From: Takakia lepidozioides
Taxonomy: Eukaryota; Plantae; Bryophyta
Reading direction: 5' to 3'
Length of the DNA stretch: 64,000 nt
Assembly: GCA_030704615.1 (NCBI GenBank)
Contig: CM060731.1
Span: 73,780,001 to 73,844,000, forward strand
Positions 28,646-59,953 of the stretch are shown here, in pieces. The notes under the pieces are model-generated. The model ran no database searches. It was not told the origin of the DNA and saw nothing but the letters and a program-made list of their open reading frames with translations. Position numbers and translations under genes: made by a program. The stretch's first letter is position 1, and the number at the start of each line of letters is the position of its first letter.

Positions 28646-29033
28646 GGGTGTGGTATACACGTATACACTTCGCCCCCCTGGGTGGAAAGAATGTGGGGGC
28701 CCAGCAGGGCGGTAGAGGGAATGAATGGCGGGCTGGGCATGCATAAAGATCAGCGAGGCGAGTCCAGTTGGCGGGTTTGCAATGCGATCACACATGTGTT
28801 CTTTGGTAAGTGGTAGTTGGAATGCGAAAGGGAGAGAGATGGGAGAGAGGAGGGGAGGTGAGAGTGTCCAAATTGTGCGGATGAGAGCGGATGAGGGAGA
28901 AGTTTGCGGGTTTTGTTGCGGAGGAGGAGATCAGGAATGGGTTGTGGTGGATTTTTCTGAAATGGGAATGGAGATGGAGTGAGATGTTGGTGGAGCAGGA
29001 GGCGTAAGTGTGGGAGAGGCTTGGATCACGCAC

Positions 29034-32000: not shown

Positions 32001-33138
32001 TTACCTGGGCGTTGAGTTCTCCTCCAATTGTAATTGGGATGCACATATCCGGAAAGTTGTTCAAACTGGCAAGGGCAAAGCTCTGGGGCTCACTAAATTT
32101 TTCCACTGCAGAGGGGTCAACTCTGAGGTTAAGAAAACCATGCTTTGTCGCGTTATTAGACCTGCCTTGGAGTACGGATCTGCTATATGGGTTGATAACT
32201 CCAACCAGGCTAAGTCTCTAGAATCCATTCAAGTGGGGGTGCTTAAGGAGTGTATGTCAGCATGCTCCAAAACAGCCAATGTGCTGTTCGGGGTGAGTTT
32301 GGCATTCCGTCCTTAAGCTCCCGACGAGATGAATTCAAGGTCAGATGGTGGGGTCAGCTGCAACATATGCCCAACACCAGATATCCTAAGTTAATCGACT
32401 CTATATCTTGGAAACAGGACCGCCCTGTCAAACAGGCTAAGTCCTGGCAGAAGAGAGTAGAAGAGATCCTCAAGGACCTGGACCTGGATCCGCAAGTCTT
32501 GACCCTGCTGGATAAATCTGACTTAGAGGCTGTAGTGTCCTCAGCTATGTCTGTTGCCATGAGATTGTCTGATGAAAATGAAGTTAGGCAGAAAACTTCC
32601 CTGAACTTGTTTCCAGTCTGTGACATGGGGGAGGACATCTTGGATGACCTCAAGGGTCTACCCACTCTCGGCACTAGACTGAAATTTAAACTCAGGGCAG
32701 GAAGCCTACCTTTGAACAGCAAACAGAAGCAGAGAGGAAAGGGAGAGTGCAATTGCCCGTTGTGTGGGCAATCTGAAGACAGTATTCATTTTCTGATACA
32801 CTGTCCGGGGTTCTCTCACCAAAGAGAGGCTCTCTTCAAATCTATTAAGGGAATTGTGCCTGTACCCCTGTTTACCAACTTTGAAAGTCTCGAGGCTGAG
32901 CCAAAAGCCCAGGCCCTCCTGAGGCCTAGTTTTTGGGCAAATCACACACAGCAGATTGATGCTTGTGTGAAGGGATTTCTAGAGGATATCTGGAAAACCC
33001 GGATTAATTCTTTATATGGAGGTAAGTCTTACTACCAACGTCAGCCCCTGACAGAGGTAGGTTCTGTCCCTTTTGTTCCCGGTCAAACTGGGCGCGGGGT
33101 CAATGGCCACAAGGCTACGGCAAACAACGTCTTATGAG

Positions 33139-33178
<40 letters not shown>

Positions 33179-35524
33179 CCCCATCCCAGCTGTAAACCCT
33201 TATTGTGAGCCACTGTTACCAATATTTTTGGGTTGCACAACATCGCATATGCATGTGGTTTTTTGCCAACTTCCTTTCTCTATTCTTCTGCAGGCATCAA
33301 ATTAAGCACCCAGGTTGGCCATACACATTATTAACAAATTTGACTTATATATCAGACCTATACCTCTACCCCTACTCTGATGAAAATTAATTACTTGTAT
33401 CTTAATGAGATAAGCATCTTTATAATGAGATGGTTTATGGGTGTGGATGCAGCTCTTTGCATACGATTCAGTGAAGGGACTCTTGAGCCCTAAGGAAGGG
33501 AAGCCTACCTTTTTGGCATCTTTGCCGGTGTCACCTATGGCAGGGTCATGTGCAGGCATTTTATCCACTATTTGCATGTACCCTCTTGAGCTGCTGAAAA
33601 CTCGCCTCACTATTCAGGTAAGGACATAGGCAAACTCAAAATTTCTGCTGTGAATTTTCTCTTGGAATATCCACTCTGAACTGTCGATTGGTTCGCAACA
33701 GTATTCATAGATCCAAAGTAGAGCTAGTCAAGTCCATGTAAGTTCCTCGTAGTGTCCACTCTCTTCGTGTTGCCATAGTTCAGAAGTTAGGTTACTTCTC
33801 CTTCAGCCTTTGCCTGCTCGTCTTCCAAGTGTGAAGAGTGGCCTCTAACCTTATAGGGCAGCTGCTGTAGGTTAAGACCTCATGAGAAACCCTATTGAGT
33901 CATCACGTCTTCTGTTTTTCTGTTCTGTTCTAGGTCAACATTTCTGAGCAGGACAACAGGATTAGGCAATTCTTGAGTGTTGTTACAAAGAACATAGCCA
34001 CATTAAGGAAAGAGAATGTACTCATAAGATGTTGTTTTCCATAGCCTTGTGGCCATAGACCCTGCACCCAGTTTGGGTGGAAAGATTGTACTCATAAGAC
34101 GTTGTTTGCCGTAGCCTTGTGGCCATTGGGTGGAAAGAGAGGGAGAGAGAGTAATGTCCATTTTTTCCAGGGGGAAGTAGAATCGTAGTTAATCTTTGAG
34201 GTTATGTGGGTGTGTTTTGATATGGCCAGCCGGGTGAGTACCGAGGGATACTCAATGCCATATGGAGGATAATCACCGAGGAAGGAATCTTGGAGCTGTA
34301 CCGTGGCTTGGGTCCAAGTGTGATTGGAGTAATTCCGTATGCGGGTGTGAATTACTATACCTATGATTCTTTGCGCTCACTCTACAAGAGGGTGAGTAAG
34401 ACAGATAGTATTGGTAACCTTCAGACTTTGTTGATTGGTTCTTTGGCGGGAGCTGTGGCAAGCACAACCACATTTCCATTAGAGGTGGCGCGCAAACAAA
34501 TGCAGGTGGGCACCCTTTCTTGTTTCATGATTCGTCAAAGCTATGATGAGTTTGTGGGATTATGGGTCCTTATACCTCTTGTGCAACTTGAGAACAAACA
34601 CACATTGATTTCATTACAAAAGCATGAAGTGTCTAAGTTGCCATTTCCAAATTACTCCCGTGGACTGTTCTGAAACAAATCTCTGGTCAGGCGATGGATT
34701 TTCCATGGCTTATGGGGTTGGTAAACTCAAATCTAGAAGGGTGTTCTATGCTTGTTGTTGGAGTCATAAAGCTCTATACACGTCCCTCGCATGAAGCAAG
34801 AGGGGACAAATTGTGAGGGGAGGGAGGTCATACCAACCGGCAACATGTACATCCAGGATAAGCTTCTTAGACGGAGTATATCTAATGTAGCAGTGGACAG
34901 TTTATGGTCTTAGATGAGTGATTACAATTGCTTTTTCTAATATTCCAACCTTGATTGATTTTTAAGATGCAATAGTCCCCACAGTGGCCATATTGTCCCA
35001 GGAGGAACTAAAAGGAGGTCATAGTATTCAGCTGTCCATAGTTGAAGCAGACTCTGAACACTTCAGAAGCTTCTAGTGACTGTCTTTCCTATTGTTGGCT
35101 AGCACTGACAAGCAAAGTTAATCAATTATTCGCCATCAAGAATGTGAATGTTGACCAGATTCACCATAAAAGTGCATATTGGAAAATGAAACTGTACTTG
35201 AGAGAAAGGGCATAGACAAGTATAGAAGTGGTATAAGCAGTATGATGGGTATACGATAATAAGTAAAGACGATTGAAGTGCAAAATGAGGTTAAATACAA
35301 CAATAACATTTGAGTTGTGGTGTGTGCAGGTAGGAGCAATAAAAGGGAGGATAGTGTATACTAGCACATTGGATGCCTTGAGGGGCATTATGAAGGAACA
35401 AGGGGTTAAGGGTTTGTATCGAGGCCTAGGGCCCAGCTGCCTGAAGCTGATGCCAGCTGCAGGGCTCTCTTTCATGTGCTATGAAGCACTGAAGAGAATT
35501 CTGTTGGAAGAAGAACGAATTTGA
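29034..35524 (+). CDS. BT1: Mitochondrial-carrier-family adenine nucleotide transporter, Brittle1-like; exons 29034-29885, 33453-33617, 34230-34505, 35330-35524 (~495 aa)
   Basis: RRLLSGALAGAFSRTVVAPLETIRTHLMVGS, GLFRGN..NVIRVAPSKAIE|LFAYD, YPLELLKTRLTIQ, FPLEVARKQMQVGA, GLYRGLGPSC.KLMPAAGLSFMCYEA. All introns are phase-0 GT-AG. Confidence 0.93.
30449..33143 (+). mobile_element. 5'-truncated, inactivated LINE (RTE-X-like) in BT1 intron 1, flanked on both sides by (CT)n
   Basis: RT motifs KAGGPDGI, GNYRGITLL, QAGFR, FLDVKKAYDTVWRDGLW, GVAQGCTLSPLLF, FADY (for FADD), YTYLG; C-terminal CPLC..EDSIHFLIHC. Stop at 31408, frameshift near 32280. (CT)n at 30420-30448 and 33144-33176. Confidence 0.92.
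34018..34126. repeat. Small direct duplication (~39 bp) in BT1 intron 2
   Basis: GTACTCATAAGA.GTTGTTT.CC.TAGCCTTGTGGCCAT occurs twice. Confidence 0.8.
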
Positions 35525-36437: not shown

Positions 36438-39011
36438 ATGATGATGTGGGAAATGGACAAGCACGACAAGGACGACGGTGAGGAGAAACCATTCGTGGGC
36501 CAGTCGCTCACGGGAGCTCCCCACAGATTCACTCTTATGCCCACCCCACACAAGCACACTCAGTATGTTAATGGACTCTTCATGTTAGTCTATGTTTTAT
36601 TGCGGTAGTTGATCTGGAAATTGAATCTGAAAATTTGGCCTGTTGGTTTGTTTGGGACTATACCTCCGTTCTCTCTCACACATAGGTCCCTCCCCCATCT
36701 GCTAGATATCAACAAGACAAGCTCCAAGGTGACCTTCAAATTTTCATTGTTGTTGCTTATATATGTAGTCAAGGTGTATGACGATTCCATTTTTAAGGAA
36801 GTCAAATTATGTTACTACGATTGTAGAGGGCGGCCTGTCTCTTACATGTATAGTTACCAAAATCAGAAGCATGGCTTGGTGTTGACCAGCAGAATGTATC
36901 AAAGAAGTATGGGGGGATTGAGTCCTGTGAATTCGTAGTATATATGATGGTGTGTGGGTCGGGGCAGACTGCCATATGTGACGGGGACATCGGTCTTGGG
37001 AATTAAATACAAAGACGGTGTTCTGATTGCTGCGGACACTGCTGGTATGGTCTTCACTCTTCTCATCCTCCTCCTATTACTGTCATGTCGTGTTGCGCAT
37101 CTTGGATCCCTGTATTTTACTCTCTCCCTCGTCGAGTGCATACTTTCTGTCGTTGTTTCGTTGCACTTCCGTTGTTTGTTTTTTATGCTCTTCTCCCATG
37201 TAAACTTTGCTTGTTGTCCCAGGCTTAGTTTTTCCCTTTTTCACCGCACTGCAACTCGCAAGTAGAATGACAGCCAAAGTTTCGAATCCTGCAAAGTAGA
37301 AGGGATACAGTAGCAGTGGTACAGATCTTTCTGTCTGCGCGATAGAACCAATGCGAGTCCTCATGTCAACGCTGAATCACCCGTAAGTAGATTTTCGTTG
37401 GCTGTACACGATATCTCTGGCTCTGGCACTGAATCTACGAACATCTTCATCACCGCCGAAATTCAGTGGGAACAGTCTGTCTAGGCTGTTGGTATTTTTG
37501 TGTTAACTGTCATGTTTTGCTCGGAGCACCCTCTCTCGGCAGGCCTACACTTCAGAACTTTTCCATGCTCTTTCTCTCATATTCATCATTAATCGCTTTT
37601 CCACTTGTGAACAACTGCAAGGTTGCGTTGAGATTTCCAGTATTCAAAGTACCTAATGGTGTCCGAATTTTCTGTTTGGACGACTAGGACAGGATGACAA
37701 AAACTCTTCGACTCTTGATCACACACCTGCTGCATCCATGTGGCGGCAGGGTCCTATGGGTCGACGACAAGGTACAAGAGTGTGGAGCGCTTGAAGGCGG
37801 TGGGCAAGACTACACTACTTGGGGCCTCCGGCGAAATCAGTGACTTCCAAGCTATCCTGAACCTGCTGAATAGACTGATGTATGTCTTTTCAGTTCCTAC
37901 TGAACACACGTAAAGTAAGAAGAAAAAATCATGGTGACCCAAGACCCAAGAAGGAGCCCATTGAACCTATACTCCCTGCTGGGGACGATGCAGATTGACC
38001 GACGCAATGTGGGATGATGGAAACCACTTGGGGCCCACTGACATCCACAACTACCTCACTCGTGTCATGTACAACCGTCGCAACAAGTTCGACCCTCTTT
38101 GGAATAGCCTTGTGCTCGGTGGCGTCAAGAATGGCGTCAAGTATCTGGGTACGGTATGTTCCTCAGTCCTCAATGCTCATCCTCTCATATCCCGGTCAGC
38201 GTTCGTATCTGTATCTAGTACCTTAGTGTTACTGGAGAATTTTGATAGCTGCTGTAAACTTGAATAACGGGGTCAGTTACCTGTCAGTGCTCATGCAGTT
38301 CCCATATATCAGGCATAGATCACCCTCCTATAGTTCTTGGGATGTTTCTGAACAGCGGTCATTTCTGGTTTGAAATCCACCAGGTGAGCATGATAGGCGT
38401 GCATTATGAGGACTGCCATATAGCAACGGGATTTGGCATTCATCTCGCTCGACCCATAATTCGGAACGACTGGAAAGAGGACATGACGTTGGAGGAAGGC
38501 ACGAAGTTGCTGGAGAAGTGCATGCTGATTCTCTTCTATCGTGACCGGTCCTCCATCAACAAGATCCAAGTATATTACTTTTCTTCGCAAAACAACTTTG
38601 AAGTAACGGTAGTTCAATACATTGCCCTTTGCCATGCATGCTGCTAGTGCCTGTAAAGACTTCGTGCAGCCGTGGATCTAAGAGTAAGTCCGAACTCTTG
38701 CCTCCAACGGTGCATGCCTCTGCCAAATTTGGGTGATCCACACTGCCTAGTGCACTTCTCATGTCTCTCTTAGACACTGTTCAGGTGGGTAATCTAAACT
38801 GGAAAATAAAAAGCTACTCTCCAGTCCAGGCAGCCAGTTGTCTAAGGATATCAAGTGCAAAGGCTAATGCACCAAGAATTGTTTGACTGCTCTGTAGGTG
38901 GCCAATATTACAGAGGACGGAGTAAAAATTTCAGATCCCTATGCACTCAATACCGACTGGAGTTACCAAGCGTTCCACAACCCCACAGCTTCTGCAGCAG
39001 GCTCTTGGTAA
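36438..39011 (+). CDS. PBG1: 20S proteasome subunit beta type-4 (beta-7), 6 exons
   Basis: TQ|LPYVTGTSVLGIKYKDGVLIAAD, SYGSTTRYKSVER, LGASGEISDFQ, YLTRVMYNRRNKFDPLWNSLVLGGV, ATGFG.HLARPI, YRDRSSINKIQ, ending AGSW*. Confidence 0.95.
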
Positions 39012-39381
39012 TTGCAGGTTTTGAAGAAAGCAAGGAGAAGAGCTTTCCCCGCCTCTCCAAACTCTGGGGGCGTAGTTGATGTAATAACAAGCAGATTCTA
39101 GTATTAAATTGCACGCCAGCAGTTACAACATGTCTCGCATTCAACTCAAGAGATCAGAGTAGAGAGGTCATATAAAGGGCACCAGTGCTGCTGTAGGTAG
39201 GAGTTCCAGTGAGGTTGGGGATGGGAGGGGGAGAACAGTTGTCTATGGGCCCAAACTCGATGCACATCATACACATGCATACAAAACAGTGATAAAGAGT
39301 GAAAACAGAGAATGGATCAAATCTTTGAACCAAATGCAGCTCCATGTCCATGCACTACAAAAAGATGGGGAGGATCAAGAG

Positions 39382-39755
39382 GCCTCTCATTTTACAATAA
39401 TTGGGACGTTATGGCGCACGCGCGAGCTGACCGGTGGGCCCCGCGCACGGACGCCCGGCTGCCCGGCCGCGCCCACCTACTGCCGCCCCTACCAGCCGTA
39501 CCGCGCTCCGCCGCGCCCCCAGTCCGGTGCGGCCAGTCCGCTGCCCTTGAGTCCAGTTCCCTCGGTCCGCCAAACCGCCAGTCTGTCGGCCAGTCTGCTC
39601 TGCACGCCAGTCCGCTGTGCCAGTCCCCGCAAGTCCACCCAACAGTCCGTTGTGCCCGTCTGCTGCCCCAGTCTGCCAGTCTGCCAGTCTACCAATCCGC
39701 GCCGGCCGAAGGATTTGGATCGTCCATTCTGAGAAACCCATCCGCGTCATCCATG
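39382..39755 (+). repeat. Left long TIR
   Basis: Inverted similarity to 52383-52652 extends to GATCGTCCATTCTGAGAAACCCATCCG..CATCCATG. The left copy has an extra ~80 bp at 39422-39500. Confidence 0.92.
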
Positions 39756-40051
39756 CCAGTCCGCTGTGCCAATCCCGGCCAGTCCACCCAACAGTGTGCC
39801 CGCCAGTCCGCCGCCCATGAGTCCGCTTTCCTCCAGTCCACTGATGATGCCGCATCTGGACCGTCCGTTCACAAATGCCATCTGAGCCCTCCATTTTTAG
39901 GGCATGAATTGAAACCTTATCCCTGCCGTCTGCCACTTGTCAGCGCCGCGAACGTGCGCATTGATGCTCCTTGCACATTGTCCATCGTGTCCAGTGTATT
40001 GCGGCGCGTTTCTTGCAGGTTCTGAAGCGTGTCCTCTATGCTATACAGGGC

Positions 40052-43000
40052 ATGGATGTGGAAGCAGAAGGTGATGATATACTAAAAACGAGATGCTGGA
40101 TTATACGGCCTCTTCGACAAAGTTTGCAAACACCCAAACCAGGACCCTTCAACAGGAAGGACCTCCAATGGAAGAGAGACACGCAATATGGTTATATGGG
40201 TGCCAGACAAAATGTTCTGAAGGCCTGCATACCGTGGGATAGAGTTGATGACCTTCTCCTTGGAGAGGAGAGTTTGGTGGACTACCCCACTCAGTTTTGG
40301 GTGAATGTCCATACTAAAGTGCAACCCGGCATGCTAAAAGAGCCGAGAGCCAACAGTTCTCTGAACAGTTTTCATGCTTCCAGAAGTCGATAGATATCCA
40401 TTGTGATTTTTATGTCCAGGTATCAATGCTGCTATGGTCCTGATGACAAGCGCACCAACAATGCGATAGTGGATGATCCGAAACTGAAACGTGGATGACC
40501 TCTTCTGGGTGCTGGAACATCTCACCCTCATAAAGGCCCAAGGAGAAAGAAGTCGGAATATGGAGAGTCTTACAAGCGTGGTTGCCAGTGCTGTTTCAAG
40601 GTCCAGCAATGTTATCTCGACCCCGACATTTGTGTTCTCACGTACTACAACAATATGGAGCATACAGACGCGAAAGGGAACCCCTGTCATGGGAAGTCCG
40701 TTGAGTTCAAGAACATTCGCCACGCCTACGCACCACACATTAGCGAGGAATTGAAAGCATGGGTCATGGAGTGTCTGTGCCGAGGCTTGTCAGTCGCCCA
40801 AATCATGATGGAACATAAAGAGCACGTCATGAACAACACCAGGTTGGGGGATGCATGGACACGGGACGATTTTTTGCTAGAGCAGGATGTGCGCAACCTG
40901 GCCGAGAAACGGGCGTGGCAAACATTCAAAAAACATGCCAACGATGCGGAGAATGTCCGCATGTGGAAAGACCAGAACCCGAAATCGGTCTTCTTCTACC
41001 AAGAGGAAAAATTGGCGCCAACATTCAAGCACTACGATGGCGACTTAACATTCACAATCGGCATACAGACTGAGTGGCAGAAGAAGCGAATGCTTCAATT
41101 AGGCCATGCCCATATTGTTGCATGCGATGCAACCTTCGGGACAAATCACCACAAGGTACTCTTCATCCCTTTCACAATTTATCCACTTGCAGAAGTAGTG
41201 GATGTACGCACACTGGCAGCATCTGACATTCTGCATTTGAACAGTTCCCATTGTACACGTTGATGGTCTTCGACGAGTGGCTTAACGGTATACCAGTTGC
41301 GTACATCGTATGCGCGCGTGAGCGGACTACAGACCTGGTGTCGTGGATGGCAGCCTTGCGGAACTCTCTCCTCGCAGAAATGCCGGACTGGCGACCCAAT
41401 GCCTTCATTATGGACGATGCCGACGCCGAAATAAACGCCATTACGTAAGTTTCACGTACCCTCTTGTACACTCGCGTGCAAGTCCGTCGTCTGCGTCCAT
41501 TGTCTGTCTCTTCGGCAAGTCCCCTACCATACAACGTAGTCCTGGCTGCTAGTCCGGCCCATTCATTTCTGCAAGTCTGTTGGCAAACCAGTCCGCTGGT
41601 AATGTCCTCTAGCGAAGTCCGCTGGAAGACTCACTTGCGCAAGTACGCTGCAAGGTCAGTCTGCTCGGGTGTGCTACCAGCAACATCTGGGTAAGTCTGT
41701 TGCCGGTCTCCTAAGGGTAAGACCATTGGTAGGTCAGTCCGCCGAAGGGGACTGTTCGCAAGCAGTCCGCTGCAAGACTCACGTGCGTCAGTCTACTGCA
41801 ACCTCAGTCTGGTCGAGCAAGTCCGCTCGCAGGCGAGTCCGCCAGATGGGACTGTTCGCAAGCAGTCCGTTGCAAGACTCACGTGCCCAATCTGCTGCGA
41901 CCTCAATCTGGTCCAGCAAATCCGCTGGCAGGCAGGTCCGCCGGGGGAGGCTGTTCGCAAGTAGTCCACTGCAAGACTCACATGCGCCAATCTGCTGCGA
42001 CCTCACTCTGGTCCACTGGCAGGCGAGTCCGCCGGAGGGGACTGTTCGGAAGTCTGCTGGCAACCCAGTCCAGTCGATATGCCCTCTGGCCAAGTCCGTT
42101 GCAAGACTCACTTACGTAAGTCCGCTGCGAGGTCAGCGTGGTCAGGTCTGCTGGCGGTGTCATGAGGGCAACACTCATGGCAGGTCAAAGTGGGCGAGTC
42201 TGCTGCCTGAATCCGTTTGGAACAGACGAGCAGACCAGTCAACTAGACAGTCTACTGGGTTAGTGCCCAAATCCACCGGCCAAGTCCTCTTCGAAGTCTC
42301 TCATGTGGGCATGTGTACTTTGCAGGGCGGTTTTTCGAGGAGTGCTGATTTTCCTGTGCCTTTGGCATGTCCGGCGGGCTTGGGTGAAGCAATCATGCGC
42401 GAAAACCAAAGATCCTATCATTGCCGCAAACTTGCTGAAAGATATGGGAGACCTCATGTATTGTAGAGGTGGACCAATCAATCCCAAAGAAGGTCTTGCA
42501 TGGGTAGCAACAATGCTCCGACGTATGAGAAAGAAATATCCGAATGGGCATGAATTTATGGACTACATCGATGAGGAATGGCATCCTAAAATAGCAATGT
42601 GGTGTACAACAGCTCGCCATGTTCCGCATGCCAGTCAAGACAGCAATGCTAGCATTGAGGCATACCATGGAAACTTGAAGGCAAGACTGAGGATGGGGAA
42701 AGGCAAAATGACTGGGCGTAGAGTGGATTGGCTCATATGGGAACTCACAGGCCGTGTGCTAACATACTACCGGTATGCAATTCACCTGAAGACGCACGGA
42801 TTCATAAGGAATGACAAACAGGAGAAGTACATGTCCAGTTCTGTGCTTGCGGCACGCGATATCCCAGCTTGCAATGTCACTCTTCCGTTCCATCCTGGGC
42901 AACCAGCCTATGTTCTAAGCACCAATCACCCAAACACAATTTACATTGTTTACAACCCCGGATGCGAATGGGCTTCTTGCACTTGCCCATGGGCAATGAA

Positions 43001-43573
43001 GGGCAATTTGTGCAAGCATCAAGTCCGAGTCATGAAGTTGCTTCATCCACACTTGCAGGATGGACTCATAGTGCGCGCTTGTGGCACGGTGTTGGGAACC
43101 ATTCATGGAGGATTGCATAATGTGTTTAGGGTTCATGCAAGTGTTGGCGACGAAGAGGTTTTGGGAAATGCAACAGAGGGCCCTTCCACAGATGACTTCC
43201 CCTATGATGCGGAGCCTGTCCTCATACCATCCTCCATGGATGAAGAATTTGCAGACATACTTCGCATTGTTGGGGACGACAAATACCTGCAGAAACATGT
43301 GTTGTCTTCTCTTCGTATCTGTAGGGGGGAGTTTGTTGATATTCTCGCCAAGAATGTTGCAGGAATGTTGCACCCTACGGCAGCAAAGAGCTTCCGTCTT
43401 GTACATGACAACAATATATGTCGCTGAAAAGGAAACGGGATTTCGTTGAGGCATGGAAAACGCGACCCAGGGTCTTACGCAAAACAGGGAAGAGGGTTGG
43501 TGCCCCAACACCTGCAGCACACATATACTCCACAATCCGGAGAGTCGCAGACCGTATACCAGTTTTAAAGTAG
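40052..43573 (+). pseudogene. MULE-like DDE transposase with SWIM zinc finger; exons ~40052-40370, 40420-41155, 41245-41444, 42326-43573
   Basis: IVACDATFGTN (D1), FIMDDA (D2), CLWH (CxxH), SNASIEAYH (E), CTCPWAMKGNLCKH (SWIM). In-frame TGA at 40496-40498, AT slippage frameshift near 43415, and no clear donor for intron 1. Confidence 0.9.
41735..42050 (+). repeat. ~100-bp tandem array (about 3 units) in transposase intron 3
   Basis: CTGTTCG(CAAG.AGTCC..TGCAAGACTCAC.TGC) recurs at ~41751, 41851 and 41950, with a partial unit at 42041. Confidence 0.9.
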
Positions 43574-43688
43574 AGTAGGAAATGTAAGAAATGGTACAGT
43601 ATCATTCTCCCCATGAAATAAAATTTCGGCGGTACGATTGCATGTGCACCAGACGTCCAACCTGCCTACCAACCAGCCTGGTAAACTA

Positions 43689-43815
43689 GTCTTCTGGCGT
43701 CTGAACCAGTCTGCTCAATCAATCTTCTACCGTCTGATCCAGTCTGCTCAACCAGTCTTCTGGTGTCTGAACCAGTCTGCTCAACCACTCTTCTGGTATC
43801 TGAACCAGTCTACTG
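43689..43815 (+). repeat. 33-bp tandem repeat (about 4 units)
   Basis: Units of (GTCTTCTGGyGTCTGAACCAGTCTGCTCAACCA)-like sequence. Confidence 0.9.
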
Positions 43816-44459
43816 TACCAGGCTGGGACTCAGTCTTCAAACAGTCTGCTGAGCCAGCCTTCTCAGTCTCCCGGTTCTGAACGTGCCTGCACCTGGCTGA
43901 CCAGTGAGCCTCATGCGGTCTGCCCATCAGACTAGCCATTCTCAGCACGGTGGACTCTCATTACTCTGCTGACCAGACTTGGCAGTCTACTGGCCAATGC
44001 CATCCGCCTGTACTATACCACTCCGGTGACTCTCGACAGTCTGCTCACCAGTGCAAACTCATGGTTCCCAATCACATCTGCCAATCTGCCGGACTCGTCC
44101 CAACTCCTCAATCTGTCGGACTCTCGTCAGTCTGGCGACATTGCCATCTGTGTGCTCACAAGCCTAGGCATACCCTCTTCCCGTACTCTGGCAGTCTGCT
44201 GACTCTCGGCTGTTTGCTGACCAGTGGACTCCCTTGGTATGTTAAATAAAACGATTGTGTGTGCAAAGGTAAGTCCGCTTAACAACATGCAGTGAATTGG
44301 TCACAAATCTACAACGACTACTCCACACTGCACTCATATGCGACCAATAGGATGTGTATACAAAGTCATATTTTATTTCGTTGCAAATGCTCAAAAGCAT
44401 ACTTACATGACAAATGCGTCTTATGGTGCACCTCTAACCTCGGACCCAGATGGATATCT

Positions 44460-47400
44460 ATGAGGATACTGCTTTCTCAGCAGCACTTAAACCAGTGAAG
44501 ATGTACTTAAGACACTGCATCCGTTGGTCAAGTGCAAACTTGAACGTAAACCAGTGTTTCGTGAAAGGTACTCCTCTCTCTGCCCTTTTAGAAGAGGTTC
44601 GAGTATGCCCAGTTTGTAGCCATTCATAATATCCTTAGATGAAGGACATGACATAAAACCCGCATTCCCAGCTGAATGGCTGTTGGGGCACTTCAAGCTG
44701 GTTGAACTGAAATGCCCTAACCTCCTCCCAACCCGGTGAATCAACACTGTAGCCTAAACACTCCGCATGCAGCTTCCGTATCCATGACAAAACATATGGG
44801 CAACCATGCAAAGACTCGATGGAGTTCATGTGAGTGTAGCAGCCTTTCCGTACGTCGATGACAACAACACTCCAGTGCGCCCTGCAAGACGAATCTCATG
44901 AGTCTCACGGCAGCAGACCACTCAGCAAATTGTTTGATCCTGCTCAGAGGCTTGCGAAGTATCTCTCTTGCATACTCTAGCCTCTGCAATTGGGCCCACC
45001 AATTGCCTCTCCAGCAGACTCTACAGACTCCCACACTGCACGGGTCCCACTACACTCAGCCGACTCGGCAGAGTCACGACTCAGCAGACTCAGAAGACTC
45101 ATCACCCAGCAGACTCGGCATAATGAGCAGACTCAGCAGACTCGGCAGATTGAGCAGACTCAGGGCTGAGTGGGCAGACCGAGCAGACTGTCCTCATTCA
45201 AAAAACTGGGCAGATTTGCTAGACTGAGCAGGAGAGAGGCAGGTGTGAACGTAGTGACGTCATTCAAAAGACTGGCCCGACAAAACAGACTGGGTATGCG
45301 AGATCTTACTCCTCCACAATCGGAACGATTATATGATGGCAGTCTTTTATGTCTTTGCCGAGCCGAGGGACGCTCCAGCAAGAATGCAGATACTCCACTA
45401 GCCTTTCCCGTGGCCCGTCCCAATGTGTCATCATACGAGACCACGTTGAGGCTGGCAGAAGAGCAACAGTACTTGAGTACTTGTCTTCGACCGTCTTCTC
45501 ATAAAAACGACACCACAGCTCCAGCATTCTATCTGTGCACTCCGACTCCACCGTCTCAAGTGGCTTCAAGTCCGGAGGCCCGATGGAGCACTCATACCGG
45601 GGGTCGCCTTCATAAAAGTGAACCATGCAATTGTCGGCCGCGACATTCCATCGCAGGGCCGTGGCAAAACAAGAACCCAACCTGTACACAGACCACGGCC
45701 TTGTGTGAAAACCCATGTACGCAACGGTCTGAGCGGACTGACTCCATTCAACAGACTACCCATACCGAGCGGACTGAGCGGACTCGCCAGACTCACCAGG
45801 CCGAGCGGACTGAGCATACTCACACTTCTGAGTAGACTGGAGTGACCAGACTCAGCAGACTGGGAGGACTACTCACTGGTGCATTTCTTGCTGAAGAACC
45901 ACTTCCTTGTCCGTATCCAATGCCATTTTTGCGGTCCTTGTTCATGAAGACAACGGACTTGCCTTTCTTCGCAGGTTTCATGGCAACAGGACCCTCCCGA
46001 ATTTCCTGAGTCTACTCCACGACAGTCCGCTTCTTCGCTCTACTTGTGCCTAGGGATTCGGCGACTACTGTGGCCGGGTTCGATTCAGCAGACTGACGAA
46101 GTGATGCGGTCCTGCTTCGCAAGACGACCGTGTCTGCAGGCTTGTTTACATTTGCAGAACCTATATTGGCAGCCTCATGGGACGCATGCGTTGAACTAAT
46201 CCGTGCATCTGTTGGCGTTGTAAGTAAGTCACCTTTTCTGGTTGTGGAGCCAACGTGAGCAACATTGGCGGGTTGTGGAATTGCCTGGGAGGGAAACGGT
46301 ATCCTCAAGTCCAGTAGGTACAACAGATCCTGTCAATACACAGAAATTGAACATAAATCTGAAATCACAGAGGTGGAAGACGGCAGGGCACAACCTGTAC
46401 GGCGTCATTGGAAGGAAGCGACTGGGCAGACTGTTCCCCTGCTTGAACGTCAGTCAGTCTGTGTTCCTCAGAGCGGTTAGCCTGGTGCTCAATCTACTTG
46501 CCGCTATGGTCAGTCTGCTGTCGAGTCTGGTGGATACTCTCGTGTGCGGGGGGAACGGCATGTTGGCCCTTAGTTTGTCCATGTTCGGCATCGGTCTGCT
46601 GCTCAGTGTCCTCAGTCTGACCAATCTGATGCTCAGTCTGCTCACCGCTCTGGTCAGTCTGTTGTCGAGTCTGGTGGACACTCTTGTGGGCGGGGCAAAC
46701 GGCATGTTGACCCTCCTTCAGAGGGCCTGTTCAGCGTCAGTCTAATGCTCATTGTCCTCAGTCTGGTCAGTCTGGTGCTCAGTCTGCTTTTTGCTTTGGT
46801 CAGTTTGGTGGTCGGTTTGCTCTTGCAGGGAGGAGATCAATCTATCAACTTGCAAGTCAACTGTGTCTTCAGGGTCTGATGGAGAAAAAGCTTGACTACC
46901 GCCGACATCTAAATTATCCGCAGCAACTACATCGTCTAGTTCTTCAGTAAGGTCAATGATACGGGGTTGAGTTCCCATATTGCGATCAATCACATAACAA
47001 TCATCTATAGCTTTTGCAAGCAAACGAACCAAAACCGGGCTGAGCTGAATGGAAATAGTTGGCAGGCCATGGGTCACTGGAGAAGAATGGTTTATCGGTG
47101 CCCGGCTTATATCCTCAAACGATGCGCCAATATGTGAAGATGGCCCGGCGGGAAAAGAAGACTCCGTCAATGCACTGATAGAACTCCGCACAAATTCAGA
47201 GACAGGGTCCCGTTGAGGCCAGTGCAGCCGACTCTGTTCAACGAGCCAGGATCCAGACTGCTGGACAGGAAGTGTAGTTGGGTCCTCCGAGTCAGTGTGG
47301 TCGTGAATCTGCTAGACAGTCTGCAGGGCACTGTCATTGTGATGACTACTTTCAATCTGCTGGACGGACTGCTCAATGGTATGCTGCACAGTCTGTTGGT

Positions 47401-50400
47401 GCACAACCAGGTCATCCATTTGTAGCTCGGTCTGCTCATTGGTATGCTGGACGGTCTGCTTGACAGTGACGTCATCGGTATGCTGCACGGTCTGGTGTAG
47501 AGGCAGTCCTTCAGTCTGCTCGCCGGTTTTCTCATGAGTCTCCTCGTCCTCGGTGTGGCCTGTAGTGCGCCCACTCTCCTGAACAGTGGCTGGGATAGTG
47601 TTGACAGTCTGTCCATGCTCTTTTTGTTGCAGTGGGTCAGTCTGCTGAGCAATGGCGTTGTCAGCAGTCTGCTGAACGGTGTCATGGAGTTCATGTAACG
47701 CCAGCACAACATCTCGTGCACCTCTGGCAAGGGAATCGAAAGCACACTGCACGTGCTCATCTAAATCGGACATTCCTGAAACAAATGAGTTGGACAAAGT
47801 AAGTCTGACATGATGGTGAAAGAAAAGACCATGAACTTCACAACGGTCCAGAAGAAGGCGGCATTACCTTCTAGGAGGTTGCCAATGAGACCAATATCTT
47901 GGATTTGGTGTCCCAAGCATGCTCCATCGAGATGGCAAATCGCTGGCATGCGGTTTTCAAATGGGGAGCCGCACCATAGGACTTTGAACACATCTGGTCT
48001 GTTCAACACAATATCGAACATTGCTCGCTCAATTACCGCAGCAAACCATTGCAACGCCTCATCCACAACACTCTTCTTACCCGCATCCGAATCTGAATGA
48101 AACAAATACTTCCTCAAACTTTGCAGGTCCTTTACCAATTTACTGTATGAACGGAAATTGCCGAACTGCATCCATCGATGGTGAAGGAAAGAATTAGCAA
48201 TGCGATCAAAGTATTTTTCAGTAATTCCAAGCAAGTGCTTTCCCCGCACCCCAAAGGTGGGATGTGCCATGGGCATATGTCTGAGTTCCTGAGGCCATGG
48301 GTCATCCATGAGGATTAATTGGACAAGCAGTGGTGGGGCATTTTGGACCTTCGTGGCTGTTAGGGCCACAAAATGTGCGCTTTCGAGGACTTCATTCGCT
48401 TCTGCCAAAGTAAATTCCATGGAATAATGAAAGGGAACAAAAGGCCACCGGCCGTCCGTGACAATGCGATGGAGCTCATTATACCAATCCACATTGGCAT
48501 TGACTTCCCCCACCCTCAGACGGGCAAGTGTCAGGTCCACAGCTTCGGGATCAATGAGCGGCAATGGCGAGCGCCAAACTCCAAAAAGTCCCTTGGTGGT
48601 CGTGACAATGTGAGTCTGCTGGCTGGGAGTCCACAGGACAGCAGTGTGGTGGATGGGCGTCTTCTGGGTGGCAGTTTACTGGTTGGGAGTCTCCTGAATA
48701 GCAGTCTGCGGGCTGGGAGTATGCAAAGCAGTCTGCTAGATGGGAGTATGCTGGACGAGAGTCTGGTACATGGGAGTGTGCTGGACAAGACTGCGCTGAC
48801 TGTGAGTCTGGTGGGAAAGAGTCTGCTGGATGCCAGATTGGGTGAGGTCTGTGTCCACCGAGTCTGCAGTGAGTATGGTGTTGACCGGGGAGTTGGCGCG
48901 TGCTTTGTCTGCAGAGTCCAGTGCTGCTATGGCGTCTGCTGAGCCAGGGTACTTAAACAAGATGTACTCCCGCACCCGCTCCACTTCCCGGCGCACCGCA
49001 TTCACTACTAAAGGAGGGTCGGAGCTCACCGTCCGCCAAGCACACAAGGCCTCCCGAATACTGGCTCGTTCATCCTGGTATATGACAGAAAACCCAAAAA
49101 CTCAGCATCGGACTCACTAGCAGCAGACTCACCAGCATCGTGGCACAGAACAAATGAACCAGCGGACTCCAAGGACTGACAAGCAAGTCCACAAGCAGGG
49201 GACTGACTAGCAAGTCCACAAGCAGACTGACGCAGCAGACCGAGCAGGTAGACTGAACCAGCAGACTCTATGACAACAGACACCAACTGTGGGGACAGAC
49301 TGGGCATTACCTCGTCGTCGTCGTTGACACAAATGTCCTCCTCATCTTCAAGGGAGCTCAACCAATTTTCCTCCGCTGCTCGGATGGTTCTGCTAAGCTG
49401 TCCGGACTAGGCAAAACTGTAGAAAAAACGGAAGAAGTCTGCATCGTCCACTGGTGGGCACACCGATGGGAGAAGCCCAAATGGTATGAGGCACAATGTG
49501 CCAGAACAGACTCCACTGGTAGTCTCTTTCGACTGGACTTCGTCCACGTGAACCCTCGACTGGTAAGGCAAGACAATGTCGACGGGAGATGAGACACCTC
49601 CCAGACCTGCGAATTCATCATTCCGAATGATGTTTGCAGACGGCTCAGCAGACTGGCTCTCACTCAAAGTACTGATGGTCTGCATCTGCTGCGTAGACCG
49701 TCTCCCTGGCACAGCCCGTGACACTTCCCGACTGCCTTGAGGACGAGTCTGATGTTGAGATTTCGCCCTCGCCTCCCGAGCAGACCTTGCAGCCTTTTCT
49801 CTTTCCTTCTTCTGGGCCCCATCACTAAGTTTCCTTTTTCTGGGACCCACAGGCGATGGCAATGTCAGATCATGCACATCTTGCATTGAAACATCCGAAC
49901 CCATCCCATACCGTGCGCGCACCTCCGCCAAAGTGCGGGCCTTTGGGTTTGCGCCACGGAGTCTGGCGGTGGCCGCATTCACCACCCTCATTGAACTTTG
50001 AACTGGCCACGACTTGAAGCCAAGTGGGATATAGCGCTTGTTTTTGCAACCCGTGTCAACACAATGGCGGTTTAGCTGCACTTTGTCCTTGATAATTTCA
50101 CTACAGAAGGGACAGTGGAGCTTATCCTTCTGCCAGTTGGAGTCTGCAGGCTTGATTGCGCGGAGGTCTAAGAATGCTTCGACTATTTTCACATCATACT
50201 CCTCAGGTGAGTACCAGTACCTTCGCTCCTTTAGCCTGGACTTGTGCATGAAATGCAACCAGTCTGCTCCACCCTTTGCACAAACATCCTCCATGGCTGC
50301 AGAATCATACAAGAGATGCAGCGGCAATGAGCGACAGACAGACTAAGAATAAGAAAGCAGAGAAGAGCGGAAAAGAGAAAGAAACCAAAGCACAAAGTAC

Positions 50401-50571
50401 AAAGAGGAAAGCTCACCGGGCAACAAGCGACGGTTGTTGCGACGATTCGGTGCTCATGGGACTGTCCGCGCCTCGAAAAACTAACATGCGCAAAGGAAAG
50501 CGGGCTCGCACCAATGGGAGGTGGACAAGCCCTAAACGAAACAGTGCGAAAGAAGTCCAGCGGGAAGTAGA
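44460..50571 (-). pseudogene. Large spliced accessory gene of the transposon: Zn-finger-like, unknown domains, Gln-Thr repeats, C-terminal Ulp1/C48 protease (may extend 5' to ~52056)
   Basis: Successive minus-strand ORFs (50327-49407, 49361-49311, 49047-48736, 48564-47868, 47777-47312, 47191-46742, 46323-46012, 45716-45309, 44881-~44460) mostly join through GT-AG introns or single TAG/TAA stops. Motifs CPFC..LNRHC, IIVPIVEE|AHWSVVVID...MNS, VPQQPFSWECGFYV. Confidence 0.8.
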
Positions 50572-52382
50572 CCCTACATGTGCGGAGTGACGTGGCGAGA
50601 TTTCACTGGCGCCCCTTTTTGGCCGCCAACGCATTAAATAGTTGCAGACCCCTGACACGTGCTGGTGGTATGCCACTGCACAGACAGTCCAGCAGACGGG
50701 ATGAATGGGACTATCGTCAGTCTGCCGTCGTCGCATTCATCAAGTCCAGCAGACTTACTCCTGATGACAAAGATGGCCGAGCAGACCCAGTACCCTCCAC
50801 AACAGACTCATATGCCACCGCAATGACAGACTGACGACTGAGGTTAAGCGAACTGACGAAGAGACTAAGGCGAGTGCGGAGTCTGGTGCGGAGTCTGATG
50901 ACGTGCTGCGACGTGATTGGGCCTCCTTACCGCCGTCGCTGCATTTATTGCGTCCAGCAGACTTAAACCTAATGACATAACGGCCGAACAGACCCACTGC
51001 AAACAAACTTGTGCAACAACAGACTCGTATGCCACTGCACGGACAGTCCAGCAGACGGAAGGTTCAACAGACTGACGAAGAGACTGGCGCAGAGTAATTT
51101 GCGCGACAACAGACTGATTTCTAACAGACTAATATCCTAAAAGACAAAGTATCCCCTAGGCGGCCGGGTGATCCGGGAGTAAACTGTAAACCGCGTCCAG
51201 CAGACTTACACGTGATAATAATCACGGCTCAACAGACCCAGCGCAAACAGACTTGCGCCACAGTAGACTGACTTTGTGACAGTCCAACTGACTGATATCA
51301 GAAGAGACGGACAGACCAGCAGTCCGACGGCTCAGCAGACTCACGACAATGCGGATAATTAAAAGGTAGTAGTTAAATGGACTCATATCCGAAGAGACGG
51401 ACTTCCAGCTGACCAACGGTTCAACAGACTGACGAGAGAAGAGACTTCGGGGATATGACGAGATAAGACACTTCGGAATTTGGCAGGCAGTGACGGCCCA
51501 GTAGTCCAGTGAAGAACAGACTCACGCCACACCAGACTTGTATCCTTACAGACCAACAATCCAGCAGACCAGACAGATATCCCATCAGAACCACGCTTGG
51601 CGTCGCCGTCATGCCGTGGTTACATTTCATCCGTCCAGCAGACTTGCATATGCCCATACTCATGGCACAACACACTGCTTAGAGAAAGTACTGACAAAGA
51701 CGCAGTCGAAGAGCCTGTTGATCCACGCGCATTTGCAGTCATAAGGACCTCGAACATCCACAAGCAACGTGAATCCACATCTCTCAGGCTACGTCTCTTT
51801 TCCCATTGTCCAGTTTTCAAAGAGACGGTAGTGGTTGAGATGTGATGTTTCAGGAGGTGAATCTGGATGTTTGAGGACCTTTGGACTGGATCCTGTTCCG
51901 TTCACACTCTCCGCAGTTCTCAGACATGTGGTGATAGAGACGTCCTCCCCTGAACAGTCTCATTGGTGGACATAAATTCTGCAATGTATACACGCCCCCA
52001 CGTGCATATGCTTCCGCGATTTCCGCTATCGTGTTACCAATGGTTTCCTGCTCCATACGAAGGACCTCGGACTCGGAGACACACCATAAACCGTAAACGC
52101 ATGCAATTTTTCCACATATCGTCCTAAAAAATAAGCACGTCAACACAAAATGAAGGCGAAAATAGTGGAAGCATATGCACGATGGTGGCTGTAGAGCTCC
52201 GCCAGCCCTCTCATGTTCAGGCACACCCTTCATCGTCATTAAAATCGCCATAAACAAGAACAACAGCCGCATGCGTGCAAAGTCACCTCCGCAACATTGG
52301 ACAACAAAGAGCCGCAAGAACGAGACAACAAGAACGAGTGGGTGAGTTCGTGGCAGGGTGTTACGATCTTCCATGCCCTAAA

Positions 52383-52652
52383 CATGGATGGCACGGATGG
52401 GTTTCTCAGAATGGACGATCCAGATCCTTCGGCCGGCGCGGACTGGCAGACTGGGGCAGCAGACGGGCACAACGGACTGTTGGGTGGACTTGCCGGGACT
52501 GGCACAACGGACTGGCGTGCACAGTAGACTGGCGGTTTGGCGGACTGAGCTCACGGGCAGCGGACAGGCGGGCGGACTGGCCGCGCCGGACTGTGGGCGC
52601 GGTGGAGCGCGGGCGTGCGCCATAACGTCCCAATTATTGTAAAATGAGAGGC
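52383..52652 (-). repeat. Right long TIR
   Basis: Reverse complement of 39382-39755. Confidence 0.92.
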
Positions 52653-53612
52653 AAGAGCTTTCCAGTGGTATCTTTATATTTTAAAATGGTTATAATCCCA
52701 AGTTACAATGAACAAGGTTCACCATGCACCACAATAGGAACATGGTGCGTCAAAATAGGATCAGGATATAGGACTTGCACCCTAATTTCGAGTTGAAATT
52801 CTGGTTTCGGTTTAGTAGTTTTGTTGCCTGTGACTGAATAATTGACAATATAAACATTAAAGTTGGGGGGCATGGCCTTGGTCAGTACGAGCATGCCTTT
52901 GGGGACCCACAGCAACTGTCCAGCCCTGTCCAGGGACCAACTCGGAGGGTTGAGAAGAGAGCGTACGCTGTCAGTCTGCAGTCGGTAGTATCTCATTAAC
53001 GTTCAATCTTTGTTGCCAGCACGGATTTATCAATGCAGGACGCCATGTGCTCGGTTGGTACACGGCAGGCCTGTCGTAGTTGTTCATGGATATGAGTCGT
53101 TTGTCTTGATTGCACTTGGTTTGGGTGTTTCACATTGGCAAGGAGTACGCGGTCTCGTGATTCTGTTGGGAGCAATCTCTTCTCTCTCTTCCTCTCTGGA
53201 TTTGCGGATTGTTTGGTCTGTGGGTCTTCGTTGTCAGGTTGGTGTCACTTGGGTTGGGCCTACTGACCAACGTGATATTTCTTTTCGCTGTATGATCTAA
53301 GTGTCGCTCTCAGGTTCCTTCAGGAAGTTTCTATCCTCTCAGCTGTGTACGAATACAGCGACTCTCTCCCCCGTGTTTTCGCAGTCAATTGTTAGTGTCT
53401 TCTTTTGAGTTGGGGTTTGTGATTAGTTATATTTTACAGGCCTGCCTTTGCGAGATCCTTTTGCCTGGACGTCCTCGCAATTCCAGAACCCAAAAGCTTT
53501 GAGTCTCTACCGGAGCCACTTTTCTCTTTCCTTCTCCGCAATGCAGTCTGCGTCTTAGTGCCACGGGAATCTTGACTTCTCTGAAAAGTTCAAGCAATCC
53601 AGCTTAGTTATC

Positions 53613-57242: not shown

Positions 57243-59953
57243 TGGAAAACGAAGCCTCAAAAGGCTCTGTTTGCACAACGGGGCTGGAGCAGATCTACTT
57301 GATATCCGGTCACGGAAGAGAGAGGGCCTGATCTTGTGTGGAATCTGGGATCCACTAACTATCAACCACGGTGCACATTGGATCAGCTCCTGTAGAAGCT
57401 CACGATTCCTATGCCTCAAGCCCTCCAACTTGTACATTCTAACGATTCTAACACAGATTTCAATCTGAACTTGCGCAAGAGTCCTACAAGTTATACGTAT
57501 ACATACGGAGTTCTTCATGTGCTTGTGCACATGTGGGAGGTATTGGGCAATCAGACTTCGCACGACCTCCGGGTGGCGCGCTGGTTGTCGACCTTCCTTC
57601 TAATGAGTGGATTTTGATTAATTGCCTTGAAAGTTTTTGCTGTGATCCTGGCATCTTCTTTTGTTTGCTGTTCGACCAGATCTTGTGACCTTTGCCCAGA
57701 GGTTTAATGTTTATTCTAAGGGCACGAAGTAGGGTTTTCTCTTTGTTGCTTCTTGGTTGAACGGCATCGTGTCTGTCTTCGCAGCCTACTTTCTTTTGCT
57801 GCATGACATTGTTGGATATTGTAAGCCTGTTTTGCCCTCTCATCAGACTAGGCCCTGAATGCATGTTGAATTCTGAAAGTTAGCTGGTTGGGTGGTGTTG
57901 AGGGCACCTTCTTCTTCGACCTCTTGCAGCCTGCTTTGCCCTCTCATCATACTCGGCCCTGAATGCATGTTGAAATCTGAAAGTTAGCTCGTTGGGTGGT
58001 GGTGAGGGCACCTTCTTCTTCGACCTATTTCAGCCTGTTTTGCCCTCTCATCAAACTCGGCCGTGATTCCTGATTGCATGTTGAATTTCAAGTGACGGTT
58101 TACTTACTATGCAAGAGTGGCTTCAACAAACGCTTCAAGTCCGCTTTCCTTCCTTTGGTACTCAGCCCGGGCCCAGACCTGGTACTTACGATTGCCAAGT
58201 GGGCCCTTGGGATATCTTGCCAGATATAGATAAGTATGTTGCAAGTGTAGACGTTGTGGATCACAAACATCAACCAGTTTGTGTGGAAGAGCTTTCTGGA
58301 GCTGCAAATGAGGAACTCGTGAAGCATCATTATTGGAATATCCTAGCTAAAGTGGGTGGTCTCGTTCTTGGCGACAAATTAACCGTCCAACCCAAGGTTT
58401 ACTCGAGCTCCTCATCCTTGAGGACTCAAATGGGTCCAAGCGAACGAGCTCAATCCGTTTCCCGTTCTGACCTGGTGCTGTTGCTCAACGGTCTACGCTT
58501 CTTAGTTGTCGAGATGAAGTGACCATCTACATTTAGGACAGGTGTGCATGCGAAATGTCCAAACTTGTGTGACGCTTGTATGGACGTTTGTCGGCCTTCG
58601 CCTGCCGCCTCGATTTGAGGCTTTGGTTGGGACTATTTGCCAGATCTACACTTACCTGGTAAACATGACGTTTGGGCTATGGAATAATTTCATCGTTCGA
58701 CTTGTCGTATTTTCTACGTCGCGTGGGGGATACCTTTGAGATATCTGAAGCCATAACCTGTGGAAGTGGTAAATTTCTCGGTGCGCTTGGCTACGTCTTG
58801 GATCTAGCAGCCCATGACCTGCAAGTGTTTGAAGAGCCAGATCAAGGTAATGGCCTGTTCTGAAGTATTGTGCAATGTCGATTGAATGAAAGCATTATTT
58901 ACTAATAATATTGCAGGTGTCCAGGTGCTAATGGGGTTGTGTTTTTGTAGGGGAAGAATCTCCTAAAGTCAATTATCAAGACTTTGGTCAAGACAGTTCC
59001 CAGAGCCAGGAGCCTCATGATGATTTATACTTAGGAAAAGGAAAAGCAAATGATGTGGGACCTCACCCTATGACTACTCGGTAAGTGTCACTGTTTGTTT
59101 TGAACACTCATGGTGAAGTTGCGAGTCCTGATAGTTAAATGAGGCAATGACTGTAGTGTTTTCTTGCAGGAGCCGCAGCGAGTATGATGGGTTTGCGGGA
59201 GACTCCTGCAGAACATTTGCATTTGGAAGCGCATCCCTTTGCGATAGGGTGGAGTGATAGGGTGGAGTGGAAGGATCGTACGTGGCACATATGAGGGTCA
59301 CCCTGTTGTAGTGAGAGCCGTTTGGTTCGGCCCGTGTAGAGGTGATGCTTCTTTCTTCTGATGGGATCCATCTTTGTGAAAGTTCTAAATGTATATCTGC
59401 GACTCATGTGATATCTTGTGTGTACAGGCTCTCTTGACTGAGATACTGGCCTATTACAAGCTGAAGAAGTACTGGGGAAAATATGTACAGGAGCTTGTAT
59501 CGTATGGGACTACTGCGGGGGGCAAAGTTGTGTACATTGCAACAGAAGTCATCAATGGTCATGAGATTGGAATTGGTATGCTACATAATAAGATTGCTTT
59601 TACTGTTCGTGTAGTAGGGTACTAATATGTTGAATGCACGGTTTGCAGGAGCTTTGACCCTAGGAGTGGTGAAGGCGACATTTGATGCACTTAATGTTGT
59701 GCACGAATCTGGAATTCTTCATGGGGACATCCGGTGCAATAATATCTTGGTTGTAAAGAGAGGGCAGGGAGGTGGTCGTTTGATCGATTTTGGGTTTTCT
59801 CATCCCATCACCAGCAATGAAGATTGCGAGAGAGAGAGAGAGTGTGCACAGCTGGAATTAATTTTTAAACAGTGTTCTAGTTCTCATTGGTCCCGTCCAA
59901 ATGTAAGGGAAATTGGCCAGCTTTCTCACATGCGGGGGATTGTGACTCCTTAG
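57243..59953 (+). pseudogene. Decayed REase(PD-(D/E)xK)+protein kinase gene, Crinkler/CR-like architecture
   Basis: SDLV...VVEMK*P, QIYTYL, YGIISSFDLSYFLRR...EISEAI (REase); AIGWSGRIVRG, EILAYYKL, LHGDIRCNNILV, LIDFGFS (kinase); possible LHVLV header motif near 57512. Contains stops and frameshifts; the 5' limit is uncertain. Confidence 0.65.
57825..58090 (+). repeat. 104-bp tandem repeat (about 2.5 units)
   Basis: GCCTG.TTTGCCCTCTCATCA.ACT.GGCC starts at 57825, 57929 and 58033. Confidence 0.9.

Follow-up and report, generated by a model that had tools for sequence, protein, structure and literature searches.

A Mutator-type element of Takakia lepidozioides filled with one short word, a putative docking site for an element-encoded protein

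The VANDAL elements of Arabidopsis are Mutator-type transposons with ends other than terminal inverted repeats (TIRs). They encode VANC proteins (DUF1985), carry family-specific arrays of a short motif in uniform orientation in introns and upstream regions, and include the KIU group; their capture of Ulp1 has been placed at the monocot-eudicot split (PMC5735166, PMC10398659, PMC13317346). Motif arrays of the VANC type are known from eudicots, and anti-silencing borne by a transposase was first reported in 2026. In Arabidopsis, the AtMu1 transposase alone binds a motif, and hypomethylates and activates its family (bioRxiv 10.64898/2026.08.24.746577). Here, we analyzed a window of 64,000 nucleotides from the bryophyte Takakia lepidozioides (assembly GCA_030704615.1, contig CM060731.1, positions 73,780,001 to 73,844,000), in which positions 39382-52652 are occupied by a decayed element of about 13 kb, one of many copies of a Mutator-type family in a non-seed plant host. 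One word, AGTCYG, fills its TIRs, introns, spacer and leader as well as its low-complexity coding stretches; this word is probably a selected docking site for a protein that the element encodes, gained by point change and multiplied locally by tandem duplication. A preliminary description of this locus had proposed a VANC-like system in which an accessory protein delivers a deSUMOylase to the element; that model is possible, but another is best supported.

The left terminus is fixed at 39382, as five contigs from run X5, which represents another sample, depart exactly before this position, each with a different flank. The TIR arms are 91-96% complementary across about 270 bp, and this one insertion is bordered on both sides by the 5-bp target-site duplication (TSD) AAGAG. 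A 9-bp duplication is absent at the element ends, and a 7-bp duplication with one mismatch is disfavoured because the flanks of other copies break at 39382. The TSD of the related Adiantum element L002 (5926-16058) can be read either as 5 bp, with a single terminal mismatch, or as 7 bp, with a single mismatch. Since the target duplications of Mutator-like elements (MULEs) are 8-11 bp (PMC6446971), the element is atypical, and its 5-bp duplication may mark an unrecognised Mutator sub-group; it is filed as Mutator-type through its transposase and TIRs, and not as a canonical MULE. The transposase gene has four exons on the plus strand and encodes a D, D, CxxH, E core followed by a SWIM finger. 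Exon borders were placed from splice signals and homology, and domain searches were made exon by exon. The SWIM finger (PF04434) scores above its cut-off, and the MULE domain (PF10551) matches one 66-aa exon at E=0.001, short of the curated cut-off; the full-length homolog P0010 also has PF10551. The closest named proteins are a hypothetical protein of Adiantum and a SWIM protein of the seed plant Ilex (P0011), the latter 34% identical to the last transposase exon. P0011 is probably a domesticated gene derived from this transposase lineage, and we take it to resemble the domesticated seed-plant genes of the At4g13970/At1g60560 type.

Same-species contigs span the whole of 39300-45290 by the thousands, so the family is multi-copy. 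Compared with the window copy, other copies in X1 carry T>C or A>G at 151 of 345 places and C>T or G>A at 77, and most of them lack the stops at 40496 (TGA) and 44637 (TAA). The stops of the accessory gene are all TAG or TAA, as deaminated Gln codons would give, and C-to-T decay of this type is seen in methylated DNA. Among the top 40 differences listed, 3 of 22 A>G or T>C changes restore the motif, against 1.3% expected per change. Given the stops, the C-to-T pattern and these motif-restoring differences, the window copy is dead, bears the marks of past methylation and has lost some of its motifs. No RNA run contains the element, an absence that does not show silence.

The preliminary description of a motif packed at very high density into the element and far rarer in flanking host DNA is confirmed by counting. 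AGTCYG occurs 137 times inside the element on both strands (74 plus, 63 minus), or 10.3 per kb, and 33 times in the remaining 50.7 kb of the window, or 0.65 per kb, an approximately 16-fold enrichment. Because Markov simulations trained on the element (orders 1-3) predict 16, 34 and 67 copies, with maxima of 25, 51 and 92, a composition artefact is ruled out as the source of this density. Enrichment is 35-fold for AGTCCG and 12-fold for AGTCTG, and the extended consensus is approximately (C)AGTCYG(CTG). AGTCTG is unlikely to be a mere deamination product of AGTCCG, as it far outnumbers the mirror product AGTCCA (91 versus 27). Tandem units within the element are 99, 33, 30, 27, 25 and 9 bp long, and the array of about 100-bp units noticed in transposase intron 3 and the 33-bp array of the spacer were both verified (Table 1). 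In pairwise comparisons of seven motif-rich blocks, the longest shared alignments are just 12-28 nt; thus, a single expansion copied through the element is rejected. The reported extent of the motif needs some correction. Both TIRs are loaded, but the outermost 139 bp of the left arm and the outermost 60 bp of the right arm are empty. Among the intervals assigned to introns of the second gene, introns 1, 4 and 5 do hold motifs, but 50640-51650 lies upstream of the start codon at 50294 and is thus a promoter or 5' leader and no coding intron. Nor is the motif confined to non-coding DNA, as 38 of the 137 copies are found in accessory exons, 30 of them reversed and mostly encoding Gln-Thr (QT); the transposase exons of the window copy are almost motif-free (5 in about 2.5 kb).

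The word has a marked polarity. Relative to the local gene, intron motifs are sense at a ratio of 41:1 and accessory leader motifs at 17:4, while TIR motifs point inward at 18:0. Within the accessory gene, introns (23:1) differ from the exons, where the motif is reversed (8 sense, 30 reversed; Fisher p=5e-9). Reversed exon copies are mostly in frame as CAG ACT, and the QT codons of exon 2 are CAGACT in 6/6 cases in the window element and 7/7 in L003, a relative that comes from a different sequencing run and is 54-66% identical in protein sequence. The motif is thus written into protein at 46395-49074, and at 1700-1900 of L003, as QT repeats that are nearly always CAGACT, in an orientation opposite to that of the copies in introns. 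The exons of L003 contain CAGACT and its corresponding intron carries ten sense motifs; intron 1 of the two elements is alignable across motif-sized pieces only, suggesting that the word outlived its surrounding sequence. An improbable explanation is that a host transcription factor recognizing a GAC core, or a strand choice for U-rich introns and purine-rich exons, has shaped this pattern. The strength of the intron-exon polarity and its repetition in L003 speak for it, and CRGACT resembles the W-box core (PMC3834811); one guess for the exon reversal itself is U-rich introns and purine-rich exons. However, the TIRs are filled with the motif as well, and the differing words of related families fit an element-encoded reader better. 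Furthermore, the word of relative L011 stays, on small counts, on one strand in the introns of the two convergent genes alike, so the polarity rule is not general.

Homolog and metagenome searches recovered about 25 transposase loci with 32-48% identity and no relatives in viral contigs. Most of these loci, about 20 in all, have an enriched word of their own, as expected from the proposal of a motif that differs between related families, and the words track well-supported clades in a tree of the last exon: GTTAC in L008-L014, GTGTCAC in L004, L015 and L026, TCTCG in L027 and L029, and TATCG in L006. GTTAC-type words are additionally found on separate branches (L005, L007 and L021), with 15 copies within about 400 bp of intron in L007, and L002, L017 and L020 are without a clear word. 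Two short-word arrays were also seen, TTCAC(TA) within a transposase intron (L024, 5478-6120) and AACTTA/ACCTAA just outside the Adiantum element (L002, 20500-22221). In a coding-exon test, the protein was held fixed and synonymous codons were resampled, a null without local mutation bias. TATCG occurs 18 times in the transposase exons of L006 (1446-3609) against 4.8 expected (z 6.7), and TCTCG 19 times in those of L027 (2-1782) against 3.5 expected (z 8.5); at both loci, the 5-mer that ranks first in these exons is likewise among the top ones of non-coding DNA (p=0.007 allowing for all 5-mers). Six loci of the GTTAC clade were tested, and five of them have a z of 2.4-3.7.

It is unlikely that the pattern is neutral, that is, that a binding word in the TIRs seeded arrays through slippage and conversion that are functionless away from the ends. 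Much of the motif density does sit in tandem arrays, the motif is only mildly better conserved between array units than its neighbouring positions (13% versus 24% mismatch, with ascertainment bias), and the window copy decayed regardless of its motif load. Yet homology between the arrays does not extend past the word itself, the word persists in the otherwise turned-over intron of L003, and the QT codons of exon 2 are invariably CAGACT in two elements. Moreover, the synonymous excess in the relatives' transposase exons is not attributable to tandem expansion, since slippage cannot yield such a pattern. Selection on the motif instead of one expansion, as the preliminary description had suggested, is therefore likely, because the L003 intron retains both motif and polarity, and because words differ by clade with an exon excess over the synonymous null.

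As to which protein reads the word, the likeliest ranking places the transposase first and the accessory finger protein second. We tentatively favour the transposase, acting via an N-terminal WRKY-GCM1/FAR1-like zinc domain, at somewhat short of an even chance. The TIRs are loaded with inward copies only, the words follow the clades of the transposase tree, in L006 and L027 the excess lies in the transposase exons themselves, and AtMu1 offers a precedent for a transposase that binds a motif of its family. The motif is enriched at loci with every accessory layout, whether finger-Ulp1, finger without Ulp1, a same-strand orphan gene or none in the contig, and the transposase is the only part common to all motif-bearing loci. 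WRKY-GCM1 domains are known DNA-binding domains of MULE transposases (PMC1702500), and the invariant core recognized by WRKY domains, GAC (PMC3834811), is contained in CRGACT, GTGAC and GAGAC. In the N-terminal region of the transposase, the ligands C, CxC, H and H are conserved among relatives. The domain modelled from L011 (pLDDT 59) is matched in the Atlas by FAR1 and WRKY clusters (TM 0.54 by target, 47/51 residues), so that the domain may have a WRKY-GCM1-type fold. In the proposed mechanism, this domain would bind the word; the inward copies in the TIRs would be used by the transposase to hold the element ends, and the internal copies would let it cover the element along its full length and maintain its transcription, with the finger-Ulp1 protein as an optional helper. 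An effect of word reading on methylation is proposed by analogy with the AtMu1 transposase at TIRs.

Several observations weigh against the transposase as reader. Clade tracking cannot separate the candidates, because transposase and accessory gene are co-inherited. No accessory gene lies on the contigs of L004 and L005, which do have motif clusters, but these contigs are short, and the gene is perhaps missing through truncation only. The fold evidence is weak, as PDB and Pfam searches with the N-terminal domain gave no significant match, and the words GTTAC and TATCG lack the GAC core. The five motifs in the window transposase exons compare with 1.8 expected, a small excess that is not significant across all 5-mers. 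AtMu1 acts at TIRs (bioRxiv 10.64898/2026.08.24.746577), and arrays in introns are the VANC pattern (PMC5735166). In addition, Adiantum L002 has a transposase and TIRs and no motif load, and a finger gene is present in both complete motif-rich elements.

The accessory gene, convergent on the minus strand, has six exons and about 1,600 codons. It encodes first a C2HC finger and a basic stretch, then an orphan domain of about 260 aa with QT repeats on either side, and finally Ulp1. The claim of an Ulp1 domain in the second gene holds (PF02902, E=1e-10), and the top PDB matches of this C48 protease are SENP1, SENP2 and Ulp1; identity as a deNEDDylase (SENP8) was considered, and only SENP1/2 and Ulp1 were among the PDB matches. 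In the window copy, the catalytic triad reads His-Asn-Cys, with His and Cys present and Asn at the catalytic Asp. The orphan domain has one homolog among 1.8 billion representatives and no Atlas match, and the N-terminal finger region has no further homologs and only weak C2H2-like Atlas matches. The VANC domain DUF1985 gave no Pfam match at E<=1 in any exon, nor in relatives; sequence searches of the PDB gave no match for such a domain either, and the fold model of the orphan domain (pLDDT 36) is too poor to exclude remote likeness.

It is possible, but rather unlikely, that this finger-orphan-Ulp1 protein is a VANC analogue that reads the non-coding arrays and lowers silencing, with Ulp1 stripping SUMO from silencing factors. 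One-orientation intron arrays match the target pattern of VANC21 (PMC5735166), VANC-Ulp1 fusions exist as KIU (PMC13317346), and the variable region has peptide repeats in tandem, reminiscent of VANC. The accessory relative L003 keeps motif and polarity in its otherwise unalignable intron. Additionally, the window element and L011 (1-8842), a complete GTTAC element of 8.8 kb, share a convergent gene with the finger spacing C-x2-C-x12-H-x4/5-C, and no such finger gene was detected in the motif-poor L002. Set against this are the missing DUF1985 and PDB matches, the Asn at the catalytic Asp, and fingers that are just 20% identical over about 115 residues between the window element and L011. A single finger also offers a small DNA-reading surface. 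L011 gave no Ulp1 match, so Ulp1 is dispensable for the motif pattern, and motif enrichment is also found at loci without a finger gene; in L001, the transposase is accompanied by another kind of orphan gene, on the same strand, and the motif is weak (17 of 26 sites inside, p=0.0005). This orphan gene (12845-14233), behind the L001 transposase, appears by eye to encode a BAH domain and a ubiquitin-like tail; Pfam and PDB searches with it were empty, and the BAH domain was not confirmed. Of the VANC-like system proposed at the outset, a family-specific motif under likely selection and an Ulp1 gene remain. No DUF1985 was detected, the triad of this copy has Asn for Asp, Ulp1 is not required for the pattern, and as candidate readers the transposase and the accessory protein are at least on a par. 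We consider it doubtful, and less probable than the VANC analogue as such, that a little-described short-TSD Mutator-type lineage of non-seed plants independently evolved VANC-like anti-silencing, in which a new C2HC-finger/orphan-domain protein, with or without Ulp1, would read a family-specific word amplified across TIRs and introns and even into codons, with reader and word co-diverging between families.

Table 1. Features of the element at 39382-52652 and its target-site duplications, in window coordinates.
Feature	Coordinates	Strand	Basis
Left target-site duplication AAGAG, 5 bp	39377..39381	+	five X5 contigs diverge just before 39382
Left TIR; 11 motifs in 39521-39825, all inward	39382..39795	+	
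Transposase exon 1; 3' end approximate, donor unclear	40052..40374	+	
Transposase exon 2; C..CxC..H..H zinc-binding region, first catalytic D 41126, TGA stop 40496	40420..41155	+	
Transposase exon 3; MULE domain, second D 41413	41245..41444	+	domain search
Transposase intron 3; 18 motifs, all sense, 99-bp array 41736-42015	41445..42325	+	
Transposase exon 4; CxxH 42357, catalytic E 42657, SWIM 42978, frameshift near 43415	42326..43573	+	
Spacer of convergent genes; 33-bp array 43671-43811, 8 + and 4 - motifs	43591..44400	.	
Accessory last exon; Ulp1/C48 protease, TAA stop 44637	44458..44881	-	
Accessory intron 5; 9 motifs, all sense	44882..45309	-	
Accessory exon 5; probably N-terminal part of protease, no Pfam or PDB match	45310..45681	-	
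Accessory intron 4; 8 motifs, all sense	45682..45876	-	
Accessory exon 4; low-complexity linker containing a stop	45877..46329	-	
Accessory exon 3; QT-rich repeats of reversed motif (16 reversed, 3 sense), stops, frameshift near 46740	46395..47775	-	
Accessory exon 2; QT repeats, then conserved orphan domain of ~260 aa (48640-47868)	47868..49074	-	
Accessory intron 1; 6 motifs, all sense (L003 counterpart has 10)	49075..49310	-	
Accessory exon 1; start codon 50294, C-x2-C-x12-H-x5-C finger 50114-50046, basic stretch, TAG stop 49409	49311..50294	-	
Leader/upstream region; 21 motifs, 17 sense	50295..51700	-	
Right TIR; 7 motifs, all inward	52383..52652	-	
Right target-site duplication AAGAG	52653..52657	+	

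Within the element, 51660-52000 has few motifs, splice-like signals and Cys-rich frames with stops, possibly a small third gene; the single frame scanned gave no Pfam match. Outside it, a host gene (38500-39000), presumably a proteasome beta subunit as judged by eye, has its last exon about 400 bp ahead of the element. A LINE-like reverse transcriptase at 30397-33134 (PF00078, E=1e-23), ending near a (TC)n run, sits between exons of a mitochondrial carrier gene (28983-34670). Inverted-repeat pairs at 24596-26584 (65 bp) and 33084-34126 (49-68 bp) are maybe small non-autonomous elements, and a 104-bp tandem repeat is found at 57824-58066.

Taken together, the feature is real, probably selected, and a variant of self-recognition systems already known, in a lineage that we did not find described; the literature searched, with incomplete coverage, yielded no account of the lineage or of comparable arrays in bryophytes. 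The families of non-seed plants, each with its own word, are natural reader-and-site pairs that could tell which of the two, transposase or accessory protein, recognizes the internal arrays, and whether systems of this kind recur. If demethylation proves true, these pairs would be new sequence-specific epigenetic tools.

In comparison with known systems, the layout is closest to VANDAL/VANC: a Mutator-type element with short-motif arrays of one orientation in non-coding DNA, a motif that varies between related families, and an accessory gene with Ulp1 and tandem peptide repeats. Unlike VANDALs, the element has long TIRs, a C2HC finger, motifs in coding exons and a non-seed plant host. Despite the similar layout, it is not a member of VANDAL/VANC, because DUF1985 is undetected, TIRs are present and Ulp1 is absent from the complete relative L011. 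In MULE/Mutator elements of the DDE-SWIM type, it finds its counterparts for the D-D-CxxH-E core, the MULE and SWIM matches, the long TIRs, the extra open reading frame and, perhaps, a WRKY-GCM1-type N-terminal domain (PMC6446971, PMC1702500), with the length of the TSD as the point of difference. Ulp1 also sits in a second Mutator gene in KAONASHI and in further MULEs of melon, rice and grape (PMC13317346), but the partner domain and the transposase lineage differ here, and the capture of Ulp1 was probably independent of KAONASHI-type MULEs. For AtMu1 and Spm TnpA, a transposase or a DNA-binding protein derived from one recognizes the motif of its own family, which it activates and whose methylation it lowers (bioRxiv 10.64898/2026.08.24.746577), which is the behaviour tentatively suggested for the transposase described here. 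Unlike AtMu1, whose binding peaks at the TIRs, the present element carries its motif from end to end, and its relatives carry their words in transposase exons.

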